A stretch of DNA of 64,000 bases from Diadema antillarum (Eukaryota). The position numbers were made by a program, and so were the translations under genes. Positions within the stretch are counted from its first letter, which is position 1. Every line of letters starts with the position of its first letter. Below are positions 22,962-48,288 of this stretch, piece by piece. The stretch is from positions 1,364,001 to 1,428,000 of the forward strand of contig NW_027270981.1 in NCBI RefSeq assembly GCF_040938485.1, read 5' to 3'. The notes under the pieces are model-generated. The model was not told where the DNA came from. It made no database searches and saw only the letters and a program-made list of their open reading frames with translations.

Positions 22962-25817
22962 ATGGCGGAAGGAAAGAGCCGCACTTTCTTGTGGTGTGTC
23001 CCTCGCTCGATCTCCTCTGCGTTGACGAAGTGTCTCACCGCCACGAAGGATCTCGAAGTCTGGTTCGAGCCGTTCTTCTTCTGCTTCGTTGCCAGACTCG
23101 ACGCCAAGAAGCGACTCGGAGTCGATTTGCCCAGAAGTTACCATGGTAACGAGGACGTTTTCCAGGAAGTAGCCGACTTGCTGAAGAGTTTTTCGCACTG
23201 CACTTTTAAACCGGATCATCTCGCGTAAGTATAAAGACAAGCTTGAAAAGAGGCCTACTCAAATTTGATTAATTGGTTGTATCATAGCTATATGTTACAA
23301 GGATATCATCTCTTTGGTCTAAACGACACTCAATGCGTAACTGTTGATCGTACATACCTCATACGATTACACAATTTAAGATTGTTCAAGAATATGTCAC
23401 GAACTCGTGTAGAGTGATGGCAACATGACTTTGAATTACACACACCTTGTAATGTGCTCAAGGTTTTTCTTGCAACACCAGTGTTTTAAAGCAATGAAGT
23501 GAACAAGAGGGAATCAGCGGAAATTTACCACAATTGTTTTCACAAATTTCAACAGTTGGTGTTCAGACGACAAGCTTGAGATAATCTTAAAGGGAAACTG
23601 AAATGTGTCGAGAAAATAACTTTTTAAGGAACTATTGATATCACTCATACACATAACTTATGGAAATTACACGACGTGATGTTATCGCCACATAATTCTC
23701 TTCAATCGTTTGAACTGAAGGATACCATTTTTTTCTTCAGAAATGATTAACTACGTAATGACTGACCTTCAAAGCAGACTCCCCTCTAAAGAAAAATTCG
23801 TGATTTTATCGTTATAGCATGCCTTGAATGATCCCAAGCCAATCATTTCTTTTTTCTTTAATTCATTCCAAAATGAATGCAATGAAAATTTCCATAAAAT
23901 CCAGTGAAAGTTTAGACTGAGGTGTTATCAATGTTATCATGATTATCAGCACTTCATCCTGAATGCGATTGTGTTCGATATCAGTATGTTTCTTGAAAAC
24001 ATTGCTTGACCTTCGTATTTTTTCTTGAACTTTTGATAAACGTTTTACGATTCTGTTTAGTTGTTGCTAGTTTATTTGTTTTGAGAGTCACTTCGAACAT
24101 GAATGGAGATTCACTTTAGATTGCCACAGCTCCGTCCTCACATGCCGGACAGAAATATTTCTACGGATGAAAGATTTTCCTTGTTCCCGTCAAGTGATAC
24201 TATACTTCCTCCCGCCATGCTTAGATGATTAAACTTCAACAATCGCACCAATAATGGACAAACCGTGCACTGGATCATTCCTTTCTAGGACCTATTCATA
24301 TAAGTACTATAGTAAATTGTAGAGCGCTATTTTGAAACATGCACGTTCAAGTTGGCGGAAGTTGATCATGATTTTGTTGTCATAGAGTAATCGAAGCTCC
24401 ATAGTAGAACCTAATATGGAACTTGTCCATTTCAGGTTTGTGTTTATCGAATAATATTGTCGCAACCACATCTGATACCACATGTGCATGTGCAATGATG
24501 TGTCAAGTTATTATGCTCACTCGTGATGTTTACCAAATGATATTGGTTTCAGCCACATTATGCATATGAGAATGTAATCAACTCTTTCACCATGCTTACA
24601 TAATCTCACTAAAAATAAATGACATGGTTTGCGTCTGTCCCGGGGGTCGGTATTTCAGCGGCGCTACGCGTCCCCCCCCCCCCCCAAAAAAAAAAAAAGT
24701 TTCCCCAATAAATAAATAAATGAATAAATAAATAAATAAATAAAAATAAAATTATGCAATATAAGCGATCCTTTCGTTTTATCTCATGTCAAAAGGAGCA
24801 ATGTGGGTCTATGAGAGACATGTGAGGTTTTGACATTACTTCATTTTAATTGTCATAATGTCGTTGCTAATTAGTCGCTGTTTCCCCCCCCCCCCCCTTC
24901 TTCTTTCATACCACTGAATCGACAGCGACGCTGACATTGAAATAAACATTGTCGATGGCACTTATCAAGTTGAATTGCAACAGAGTTTTGCTCTTCTTGA
25001 AATGGCGAATTTCATATTGAAAAAAAAAAAAAAGATTCCTTGACTCTTTCAAAATACTTGTAACAGCTAAGTGATCAAATTCATATTCACTATTCCAATA
25101 TTGTCATGATGCGATTTCCGCTATATTTTTGTGGGTTTATCTGTATTTCCTTCCTTGCTCAGGTACGAGTCTGTGAAAGAGCGATTGGAAGGAACACAGG
25201 GTGATCACGTGTTCGTCAAGGATATGGGTTTTGCGATGGGAAAGAACGACCTGGCTTGCATCCCGTCGGATTACAAGCACACCTTTCTTATTCGCCATCC
25301 ACTGCGTGTCCTGAAATCCAACCGCAAGGCCATGTTCGATCAATTCTCTCAACTCGGGATGCTGGAGGGAGACGCGGCAGAGGAACAGACCTTCGACCTC
25401 GAGCGGGATGACCCCTACATGACACCCGGGCTCCTTTTCAAGGATCTCTACGACGTCTGGAATCACGTCCGTGAAAACTTCGACGAAGACCCGATCATCA
25501 TGGATGCCGACGACATCCTGTCGAACCCCGCCGAAATGCTGTCGAAGTACTGCCGAGCGGTCGGGCTTCCGTACGACGAAGCGCTTCTGAAATTCCGGGA
25601 AGACCTCGACGTCTTTCAAATTTGGAAGGCGCCAATCGAAGCCGAAGAACTGCGAATGACCGTTTCGGCATTTTCCGGAACCGCGACGAGCAGTGTCGAG
25701 TTCATGTCGGCCAAACCCATGCCTTCACGTGAGGAGATGACGCCTGACGTCACTAGGTGCTCTGACCAGATTATTGCCTACTATGAGGAGATGTACGAAT
25801 GCCGGATGAAGGTTTAA
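22962..25817 (+). CDS. Sulfotransfer_5-family (BCAT-like N-terminal domain) sulfotransferase-like protein, array copy 1, 305 aa
   Basis: Exon 1 22962-23224 (donor GTAAGT, phase 2) plus exon 2 25163-25817 gives 918 nt open. Motifs WCVPRSISSA (5'-PSB-like), WFEPFF, HVFVKDM, HTFLIRHP (3'-PB-like) and PIIMDADDILSNP. No aminotransferase domain follows. Confidence 0.85.
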
Positions 25818-26796
25818 AAACGCAGAATTTCCATTCTGTTATAATGCATGCTCTGCATGTAAAATGTATTGGGAGCTATACTGCATATAATCTTTTGCAT
25901 CTCAGTCTAGAGACGCGATATCTGATTATGTTATCATTCATATTATAATCATAACCAAATGCATGTAATCGTGAACGAACTACATGTACAAGAAAAGGGG
26001 CATTATGATAATTAGTAAGAATGTGATAATGAAAATTGTTGCGAATATATAGGATTGTACACCAGTATAATAGCGTACTAACTAAAGGGAACTAACACTA
26101 TGACACACTCTCTGCTTCATTTATTATACCCTCTGAAGCAAGGGCAAAAACACTGCGACGGAGAAGTTTGATTACAAGAGCGTATTTCAACAAGAGCAGC
26201 GACGACAATTTTGAAGTTACAGAATCCGATGTAGTCGTCTCGTGGTCGCAAATGACTGCACCCATATATACTTGTATTATTTGACTAATAGATTTACCTG
26301 TTTCCGTGAAGTGATATTGGTTTCATATTATTTAATTCACACACACTCTCTTCTCCTCATTATTTGCTCGCATTTGGCTTTAGTTATGTGACAACGAAGG
26401 AAGCATAATCGTTATGAGCACTCTACCACGGGACTCACAGTTTGAGGTTCCATCCGAATGAACGAAGGTACTAAAACTACGAAGACATCTGCGCGTGACC
26501 CATAATTCATGTCATCCAACCTGGAGGAAGTTGATTCCATGATAGAATTCGAGATAAAGCCTGTTTTGTTCCTTTTGATTATTTAAACGAAATAATTAAT
26601 GGCATGAGCGTTCTCAGCAAGCTTTTTGGCATTGTGAATTTGAACCCCCCCCCCCCCATCAGACACCGTGTAAATGGAATGACATTCAAGTTATTGAAAT
26701 TTCAATACGTATGCGTCGCTCCAGAAACTTTATTGGTTTCTAAAGGAAAATTAGAAAAAAGAATCAGCTCATGATATGCATAATAATAACAAACCT

Positions 26797-46586: not shown

Positions 46587-48288
46587 ATGGAGTCCTCCAA
46601 TAAAGGAATACCGCCGTCATGTGTGGCTACATTAACTGCAAATACGGGGTCCGACCCCGGCGGTGGAACTCCTCCCGAGGCACGGAGCCGTACCATCATG
46701 TGGTGCGTTCCGCGCACCATCTCCAGTGCGGTGACGAAGTGTTTTTCCGCCATCGACGGCATCGAGGTGTGGTTCGAACCTTACTTCTACTGCCTAGGCA
46801 CGGAAACCGTGATTGCCAGGGACCGCAACCTAACGATCCGAAGGAATACGAAGGAAACGAAGACCTCTATCAGCAAGCAGCGGACTATTTACAGGCAGTC
46901 AGGCGATGGAATGCCCTCAAGCCTCGACACTTGTCGTAAGTAGCCTAATACACCCAACCCACGTGCCCAATCCTGACTTATACGACATCGTCTTCGGATA
47001 AACTATATGACATGCCTAAAAAGCAATCAGTTACTAATCAAATCTTAATAGATCTTAACATTATGCGGTTTTAATGATGATTGACAGATAACTCCAAATT
47101 TAATTTCAACCTATTTCTACAACTGATTTTATTTTCAAGAATATCATGTACATATCTTTGTGACAAAACGGCTAAAATAACCGTTTTCCAAGGATTTACT
47201 CACGAAGGGAAAATCGGGTGCATGTGGGGGGGGGGGGGAGGGATCACAAATGGCCTGGTTTGATTTTGCTTAATGATTATACTTATACGATGCATGTGAT
47301 TATAGATGTAATGTGGCATGATCAAACAACAACCCCCTCAAAAACAGACAAAAAGTTAAATCACTGGGTTTTCATTACTTTAAATTCATGTTCCATGCAC
47401 TGGCATACAGGGGCCGCGGAACGGGGGGGGGGGGGATTTGGAATGCGGCAACACACACACACACACTTTTGGCCGTTCGAAAAATACCCAAAAAATTAAC
47501 AGACAAAATTTTCATGATAAACACAATTTCTATAATATTTTAACCTTCATAAACACTTTAAAAATGGACCTTAGTTCTTACAAGTCTGAGGGCGCCACAT
47601 CGTGATCAACGTGTGAACTTCAATTTTCTTTATCAGATACGCGTCCATCCAGCGTCTCCTTGAGCGTTCTACAGGCAAACATGTTTTCGTCAAGGATATG
47701 GCAACCGCGATGAAAAGCTGTAACTTTGAATTTCTGCCCAAAGGATACAAGCACACATTTCTCATCAGACATCCTCTCCGAGTGTTCACCTCGCTACGCA
47801 AGGCGACCTACTCACGGTTTAGTGAGCTGGGCACGATCTGCGGTGAATCGTCGGACGAGAAAACTGTAGATGTAGGACGGGACTATATCTTCATGGATCC
47901 ATCCCAGCTGGCTTTCGGGGAGCTCTACGAACTCTGGAAGTACGTTCGTGAGAACCTCGACAGTGACCCGATCGTGATCGATGCTGACGACCTGTTGTCG
48001 AATCCGGCCGAACTGTTGCCGAAATACTGCGAAGCTATCGGGCTACCTTACGACGAATCCTTATTAAAGTGGGACGCGTCCATGTCGTTGACCGGTAAAT
48101 GGAATGTGGCCGGAGAGGATTTAATCCAAAGCATCAAATGTTTCTACGACAGGGCATTAACGACCGGGACATTTGGGTCTCCGGGTCCCATGCCTTCTCG
48201 GGACCATGTGACTCCTGACGTCATCAGATGCACGGATGCAGTTATGAAATACTATGACGAACTTTATGAATCTAGACTGACAGTGTAA
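46587..48288 (+). pseudogene. Sulfotransfer_5-family array copy 4 with a 1-nt deletion frameshift in exon 1 (pseudogene or sequencing error)
   Basis: Exon 1 46587-46935 (349 nt; 350 needed), exon 2 47637-48288 intact. ACGATCCGAAGG at 46833-46844 versus ACGATCCCGAAGG in copies 2 and 3. The ORF track shows homologous sequence switching frame at this point. Confidence 0.75.

Follow-up and report, generated by a model that had tools for sequence, protein, structure and literature searches.

A tandem array of stand-alone Sulfotransfer_5 genes, predicted to encode soluble sulfotransferases, in the sea urchin Diadema antillarum

The subject of this analysis is a 64,000-nucleotide stretch of the genome of the sea urchin Diadema antillarum (hereafter the window, i.e., the whole stretch analysed), which derives from contig JBFRCO010000093.1 of assembly GCA_040938485.1 at approximately positions 1,364,001-1,428,000, and in particular a tandem array of four two-exon genes on its forward strand. 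The array is situated between the gene for a small subunit of replication factor C (RFC) and that for phosphoribosylformylglycinamidine synthase (PFAS). A stretch of the same record (L001) is 100% identical to window positions 36587-58288, and the D. antillarum protein P0001 is an exact match to copy 2. In every copy the coding region is interrupted at the same codon by a phase-2 intron with GT..AG boundaries, and the split codon directly precedes a conserved tyrosine. Translated searches (tblastn) of the whole window for relic exons with the copy 1 and copy 2 proteins recovered only the following eight exons:

22962-23224, forward strand: copy 1, exon 1, from the ATG to the donor site, with the WCVPRSIS and FEP motifs inside it
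25163-25817, forward strand: copy 1, exon 2, ending at the stop codon; spliced product of 305 residues, intact
32388-32734, forward strand: copy 2, exon 1
33304-33955, forward strand: copy 2, exon 2; spliced product of 332 residues, intact
39157-39503, forward strand: copy 3, exon 1; a gene of 332 residues is also called here in L001
40283-40934, forward strand: copy 3, exon 2; spliced product of 332 residues, intact
46587-46935, forward strand: copy 4, exon 1, frameshifted as assembled
47637-48288, forward strand: copy 4, exon 2, reading frame intact

An earlier note, made from the letters of this DNA, had described four same-strand genes sharing one phase-2 intron between two housekeeping genes, and the gene structures agree with it throughout; the product lengths of 305-333 residues that it gave stand for the three intact copies (305, 332 and 332), while copy 4 attains 333 residues only when a missing C is restored. 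Every one of the four copies contains the motifs to which it drew attention, namely WCVPR(S/T)IS, FEP, VFVKDM, HTFLIRHP and DADDxLSNP. Its hand count of 108 identical positions out of 218 between the second exons of copies 1 and 2 was reproduced exactly, as was the greater closeness of copies 2-4, which are 86-93% identical to one another over this exon; copy 1 is 45% identical to copies 2-4. The proposed lack of a hydrophobic leader or membrane segment likewise agrees with the hydropathy profiles, in which the Kyte-Doolittle mean over 19 residues peaks at about 1.0 and the N-termini are hydrophilic, as is the longer N-terminus that one database model gives to copy 1.

The family assignment comes from profile searches. 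The second-exon products of copies 1, 2, 3 and 4 score 30.8, 38.8, 37.4 and 41.7 bits, respectively, against the Pfam model PF19798 (Sulfotransfer_5), i.e., all above its curated gathering cut-off of 23.2 bits, and full-length database models also carry this domain, so that the Sulfotransfer_5 call of the earlier note is upheld. The same is true of its statement that an aminotransferase domain is missing: there is no Pfam match to Aminotran_4, and the frames stop right after the sulfotransferase domain. Further, the non-canonical status that it proposed is borne out by the lack of any match to PF00685, the family of the canonical cytosolic sulfotransferases (SULTs), at E <= 1, together with the absence of both the PK(S/T)GT and the GxxGxxK motifs; no NCBIfam model matches either the urchin or the bacterial proteins. 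The four genes are hence members of the Pfam Sulfotransfer_5 family that encode stand-alone, soluble proteins and are not canonical SULTs. The family itself is already known, though uncharacterised, with its members deposited as "uncharacterized protein"; what is added here is the link to the sulfotransferase domains of CurM and the olefin synthases with a mapping of residues, the correction of copy 4, and the conservation of the array in Diadema setosum, where it shows signs of selection. A bacterial origin of the genes, by contamination or by recent transfer, was considered and rejected on account of the conserved spliceosomal intron, the animal neighbours, the array on a second haplotype and the orthologous array in D. 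setosum.

Structural comparisons point the same way. The AlphaFold model of copy 2 has a mean predicted local distance difference test score (pLDDT) of 94.5 and a predicted TM-score (pTM) of 0.92. In a Foldseek search with this model, all 28 matches with E <= 0.001 are sulfotransferases that use 3'-phosphoadenosine 5'-phosphosulfate (PAPS), the best being the CurM sulfotransferase domain (E 4.9e-07); the Foldseek probability is 1.00. Similarly, all 50 rows returned by VIA-align are sulfotransferases, with Z-scores from 14.2 (4gox, an olefin-synthase domain) and 13.9 (4gbm, the CurM domain, and likewise TPST1) down to 10.2; the low end of the list, at Z of about 10, comprises cytosolic SULTs, heparan sulfate enzymes and glycopeptide sulfotransferases. 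A different fold as the best structural match would have spoken against the earlier note, and these searches instead returned the sulfotransferase fold that it had predicted. A single-sequence search of solved structures gave no match, and a profile built from 71 family members reached the CurM domain (4gbm) with E 2.7e-15 and the Synechococcus olefin-synthase domain (4gox) with E 5.6e-10.

The presence of TPST1 and TPST2 among the top structural matches (Z 13.2-13.9) raises the question of whether the urchin proteins could, like these tyrosylprotein sulfotransferases, sulfate tyrosines of proteins or peptides in place of small molecules. The two groups have in common the layout of an arginine-bearing loop and, going by the base reportedly used by TPSTs, a glutamate. 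However, the family profile yields no TPST match even at E <= 10, TPSTs are Golgi membrane proteins whereas the urchin proteins have neither membrane segment nor leader, and dozens of diverging paralogues would better suit varied small acceptors than a single protein-modifying task. Protein tyrosine sulfation is accordingly regarded as very improbable.

The profile alignment allows the cofactor site to be mapped onto the conserved motifs of the urchin proteins, because it pairs the PRS of the first motif with PRSGS of the CurM domain, the glutamate of FEP with that of PPELH, the lysine of VKDM with that of DKSPTY, and the IRHP...S segment with VRHP...S. In the numbering of P0001, K116 (of VFVKDM), R141 and S149 are invariant across the 71 sequences, and R23, S26, E44 (of FEP) and H136 are each conserved in at least 90% of them. 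The three invariant columns lie in copy 2 as follows:

33359-33361, forward strand: lysine of VFVKDM, invariant column
33434-33436, forward strand: putative 3'-phosphate-binding arginine, invariant column, placed with the structure model
33458-33460, forward strand: putative 3'-phosphate-site serine, invariant column, placed with the structure model

In the copy 2 model the PR(S/T)xS loop sits between a strand at residues 14-20 and a helix at residues 26-33, and the R141/S149 pair falls with a strand at 135-140 and a helix at 143-161. The sulfotransferase superfamily is defined by a strand-loop-helix that brings a Lys or Arg to the 5'-phosphosulfate, by a strand-turn-helix that offers an Arg and a helix Ser to the 3'-phosphate, and by a His or Glu base (PMC11625862). 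Model and conservation taken together reveal the alpha/beta fold of the superfamily with its central parallel sheet, the 5'-phosphosulfate loop and an R-x7-S 3'-phosphate site in the urchin proteins. The FEP glutamate is conserved in at least 90% of the sequences and aligns with the glutamate of the CurM domain, its placement near the cofactor being taken from the alignment and not from model coordinates.

A mechanism can be proposed on this basis. PAPS would be held by two elements: the strand-loop-helix of WCVPR(S/T)IS, in which an arginine would replace the usual lysine at the 5'-phosphosulfate, and the strand-turn-helix of FLIRHPLRVxxS, in which the arginine and the serine eight residues further on would bind the 3'-phosphate. 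The FEP glutamate could then act as the general base on the hydroxyl of the acceptor, and the VFVKDM lysine could stabilise the transition state. The equivalent glutamate and lysine of the CurM domain are reportedly catalytic, a finding attributed to McCarthy et al. in 2012.

The reading that we favour, with a probability of roughly 0.7, is that the products of the four genes are soluble sulfotransferases of the Sulfotransfer_5 family which use PAPS and probably reside in the cytosol, their activity being a prediction. Several points weigh against it. The Foldseek TM-scores to solved structures are modest (0.35-0.5); the catalytic assignment of the glutamate and lysine depends on the roles reported for CurM, with their closeness to the cofactor site suggested by aligned sequence; no enzyme assay of any Sulfotransfer_5 protein was found in the literature searched; and searches of public runs found no RNA run carrying these genes. 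The same literature search returned nothing on Sulfotransfer_5 function, on the Strongylocentrotus purpuratus locus names or on a cloned choline sulfotransferase. A run designated X4 yields two short contigs that fall within exon 2 of copy 4 only and span no splice joint, and which could be RNA or sparse DNA.

Given the lack of any assayed family member in that literature and of any RNA run with these genes for Diadema, one could suppose that the proteins are catalytically dead or have another job, for instance as binding proteins or as kinase-like P-loop relatives, and that their likeness to sulfotransferases is only ancestral. Against this, all residues which in the relatives bind PAPS or take part in catalysis are fully or almost fully conserved in the 71 sequences, which come from several phyla, and the genes are under purifying selection (see below), which makes the loss of activity quite improbable.

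Homologues from bacteria provide a genomic context for the predicted PAPS-dependent activity. At least 591 bacterial genome stretches encode relatives, mostly from marine Proteobacteria and including sponge- and coral-associated lineages; neighbourhoods were counted over the 80 loci that were kept (L007-L086). The bacterial homologues belong to a conserved gene pair, in that a gene of the Amdase/Asp-Glu-racemase superfamily adjoins the sulfotransferase gene in 62 of these 80 loci (e.g., L082:2271-3227 next to L082:4001-4735), and in 54 it lies directly upstream on the same strand, with gaps mostly of -28 to +94 bases. CysNC, which makes PAPS, is among the neighbours in 10 of the 80, and other recurring neighbours are cupins of the dimethylsulfoniopropionate-lyase type, dimethylglycine-dehydrogenase-like proteins (DAO+GCV_T), enolase-family proteins, LysR regulators and ABC transporters. 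Additionally, several loci contain two tandem sulfotransferase paralogues. In a search for an animal copy of the Amdase-like partner, the best 120 of 1468 matches are all bacterial or unnamed. This context supports PAPS use and gives a weak hint of small polar acceptors in bacteria, weak because the bacterial proteins share about 30-34% identity with the cnidarian query and do not come any nearer to the urchin genes.

The association with the Amdase-like gene also bears on the type of reaction that might be catalysed. The sulfotransferase domains of CurM and the olefin synthases are "activating" enzymes, in that the sulfate they install is a leaving group which a partner then eliminates to yield, for example, an alkene; the urchin proteins could conceivably act in the same way. 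These two domains are the only solved structures reached by the sequence profile and jointly head the structural matches, and in 54 of 80 bacterial loci the stand-alone homologue lies directly downstream, on the same strand, of a gene from a superfamily that includes a decarboxylase. However, the urchin genes are stand-alone, with no polyketide synthase (PKS), carrier-protein, thioesterase or Amdase-like gene in the window, their identity to the CurM domain is only about 15%, and TPSTs, whose products are stable sulfate esters, match just as well in structural score. An activating role for the urchin enzymes is thus judged improbable.

Returning to the prediction of PAPS-dependent sulfotransferases, the acceptor is most likely a small hydroxylated metabolite, and from the 45% identity of copy 1 to copies 2-4 we infer that the paralogues are divergent enough for different acceptors. 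The role in specialised or defence metabolism that the earlier note put forward is conjectural. Echinoderms are rich in sulfated metabolites, most of which are not known to have an assigned enzyme. It is a tentative proposal, and on present evidence an unlikely one, that the characteristic sulfated small molecules of echinoderms (sterol, pigment or alkyl sulfates) are products of this family in place of the canonical SULTs, or else that the family installs a leaving-group sulfate in an unrecognised animal pathway. Were it true, the separate tandem arrays would amount to a substrate-diversified toolkit.

Copy 4 calls for separate consideration since it does not read through as assembled. Alignment and translation place the defect in a C run after position 46837, which is one base short (CC in place of CCC):

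46837-46839, forward strand: copy 4, position of the missing C, reading TCC against TCCC elsewhere

The other haplotype contig has CCC at this site and encodes an intact 333-residue product (P0005). A contig from run X1 differs from the window over 46766-47086 only by two additional Cs, one following 46837 and the other 46965, each of which falls in a C run and the second of them in the intron; at a base where the other haplotype differs, this contig agrees with the window. No contig compared supports CC. Further, the ratio of nonsynonymous to synonymous divergence (dN/dS) of the window allele against its D. setosum orthologue is 0.33, equal to that of the intact allele. Under-called homopolymers are a typical error pattern of long reads. 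The frameshift is therefore probably an assembly error in the C run, favoured by the CCC of the other haplotype and of the X1 contig and by the unchanged dN/dS, and is not put more strongly because the depth of the X1 contig is only 4.2. That same low depth, along with the plain fact that the deposited CC breaks the frame, is what speaks for copy 4 being a real null allele, i.e., a polymorphic pseudogene; but an otherwise identical contig that restores CCC and adds a second C in the intron follows the pattern of homopolymer under-calling, and this, with the CCC of the other haplotype, the absence of CC from all contigs compared and the dN/dS of the intact-allele value, renders a null allele unlikely. 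The deposited copy 4 model (P0004, 46587-46943) carries 38 residues out of frame and a displaced donor site, and so conceals the frameshift.

The comparison with D. setosum places the array in an evolutionary frame. This species has copies 2, 3 and 4 in the same order, with products of 332, 332 and 333 residues, and dN/dS between the orthologues of the two species is 0.19-0.33 for the three genes; copies 2-4 are under purifying selection. In a quick tree with SH-aLRT support (Shimodaira-Hasegawa-like approximate likelihood ratio test) only, from which P0004, fragments shorter than about 240 residues and unnamed metagenome sequences were left out, the copy 4 orthologues group with 97% support, and copies 2 and 3 are not separated. 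For copy 2 the synonymous divergence (dS) of the same-position pair is 0.16, as against 0.27 and 0.22 for the cross pairs; for copy 3 the same-position value (0.21) is not lower than that between D. antillarum copy 3 and D. setosum copy 2 (0.22). Distinctive residues fit the same-position pairing of both copies, and the N-termini of D. setosum copies 2 and 3 look homogenised, which suggests gene conversion. The array of copies 2-4 is stable and one-to-one between the two Diadema species, and the triplication is older than their split.

More widely, copy 1 groups with a Lytechinus pictus gene with 99% support; this orthologue (P0036) has the same intron position and different neighbours. The relatives in the starfish Patiria miniata (L006:6583-13635) are intronless and tandem, with products of 302, 302 and 182 residues, the last of which may be a fragment or a pseudogene; given these intronless relatives, the sea-urchin intron is either a later gain or was lost in starfish. 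In the quick tree the sea-urchin sequences form a radiation in which Diadema, Lytechinus and Strongylocentrotus each have an expansion of their own, and five more D. antillarum clusters occur on one other contig. The birth-and-death expansion put forward in the earlier note is thus supported as to lineage-specific expansion in sea urchins, but not as to "death", the sole broken copy being probably an assembly error and the array being stable. Named relatives come from sea urchins, starfish, brittle stars, crinoids, sea cucumbers, the flatworm Macrostomum and many cnidarians. Large Atlas clusters exist for echinoderms, cnidarians, fungi and bacteria, as well as for plants, where the domain is fused to Aminotran_4, and for green algae, where it is fused to Rhodanese; there is no chordate cluster among them, although the search method cannot prove absence.

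These cluster domain listings and the bacterial loci also document the bacterial members and the plant fusion with an Aminotran_4 domain, both of which the earlier note had mentioned, and relatives are indeed mislabelled in databases as branched-chain aminotransferase-like (BCAT-like) proteins, as it had warned. Two proteomics papers on sea cucumbers place a protein of BCAT-like name under amino-acid metabolism, the match to this family being by name alone.

With respect to the assembly, the window holds three runs of N, one of which falls within the array:

37525-37656, no strand: N gap in the spacer of copies 2 and 3, clear of every exon

It begins 3.6 kb past the stop of copy 2 (33955) and ends 1.5 kb ahead of the ATG of copy 3 (39157). 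The tblastn searches with the copy 1 and copy 2 proteins find no family exon near it, and both of its flanks are collinear on contig JBFRCO010001322.1 at 95-99% identity with order and orientation kept, the comparison being one of coordinates; for these reasons continuity or frame across the gap is immaterial to all four coding sequences. The gap may nonetheless hold the promoter or an untranslated 5' exon of copy 3. The latter contig (512 kb; L002, L003) belongs to the same assembly and represents a second haplotype, collinear with window 12112-59064 at 95-99% identity, with RFC, the four sulfotransferase genes and PFAS all in place, and assembly-based gene counts for the family will be inflated by such haplotype duplicates. 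Two further deposited models depart from the products given above: that of NCBI for copy 2 (P0001) begins at an internal methionine, residue 20 of the 332-residue product, and so has 313 residues, and that for copy 3 on the other haplotype (L002:5772-7618) has a 23-residue N-terminal extension (355 residues in all) which is not found in orthologues.

The spacers of the array contain several repeats. Cross-matches with the haplotype contig revealed that 28176-28871, between copies 1 and 2, and 36268-36984, between copies 2 and 3, are about 77% identical over about 700 bp; the shared sequence may represent either a dispersed repeat or a remnant of the duplication unit. The spacer between copies 3 and 4 includes, within 41426-44900, about 3.3 kb not present on the other haplotype contig; inside this stretch a 346-bp unit occurs twice, with 99% identity between the repeats (41872-42564), as does a 262-bp unit (43819-44336), and between these pairs there is an (ACAA)n run (42914-43002).

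The two flanking genes are as follows:

~9339-14959, forward strand: upstream neighbour, the 3' part of the RFC small-subunit gene
54525-64000, forward strand: downstream neighbour, PFAS (also called FGAR amidotransferase), 1338 residues, start as called; reaches at least 58288

The first was identified from Pfam matches to the RFC lid and AAA domains on open reading frames of the window (11583-12698), and an RFC gene of 356 residues is called on the collinear haplotype contig.

The locus represents one part of an animal enzyme family that is large, conserved and under selection, that is unrelated at the sequence level to the well-studied SULTs and that is routinely misnamed as aminotransferase. 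Correct naming, together with the link to CurM-type domains, turns its members into concrete candidate genes with candidate catalytic residues.

Comparison with known systems begins with the family itself. Sulfotransfer_5 members in other echinoderms, cnidarians, fungi and bacteria share the same motifs and the stand-alone length class, although those of sea urchins are 40-60 residues longer than the cnidarian (about 265 residues) and bacterial (about 240 residues) ones. In the plant namesakes, by contrast, an Aminotran_4 domain is appended, and in some green algae a Rhodanese domain, neither of which occurs in the urchin genes; the fusion to Aminotran_4 was seen only in the Streptophyta cluster. 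Canonical cytosolic SULTs are soluble PAPS enzymes of the same superfamily, with Z of about 10-12 against the copy 2 model, and are set apart from the urchin genes by the PF00685 domain and the PK(S/T)GT and GxxGxxK motifs. The sult gene known from sea-urchin pigment cells was considered as a possible member and rejected, since the probe published for it encodes the canonical SULT motif GDWKNHFT and thereby places the gene in a different family. TPST1 and TPST2 equal the best matches in structural score (Z 13-14) but have no sequence match at the profile level, and they are type II membrane proteins anchored in the Golgi, whereas the urchin proteins lack an anchor. The sulfotransferase domains of CurM and the olefin synthases belong to PKS modules, where their substrates are beta-hydroxyacyl chains bound to a carrier protein and a decarboxylative elimination comes next (PMC11730487). 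The urchin proteins differ from them in being free-standing, in their identity of about 15% and in having RFC and PFAS as neighbours with no PKS domain in the window; yet CurM (4gbm) and the olefin synthase (4gox) provide the closest solved structures by both profile and fold (Z of about 14), and their key residues align with those of the urchin proteins.

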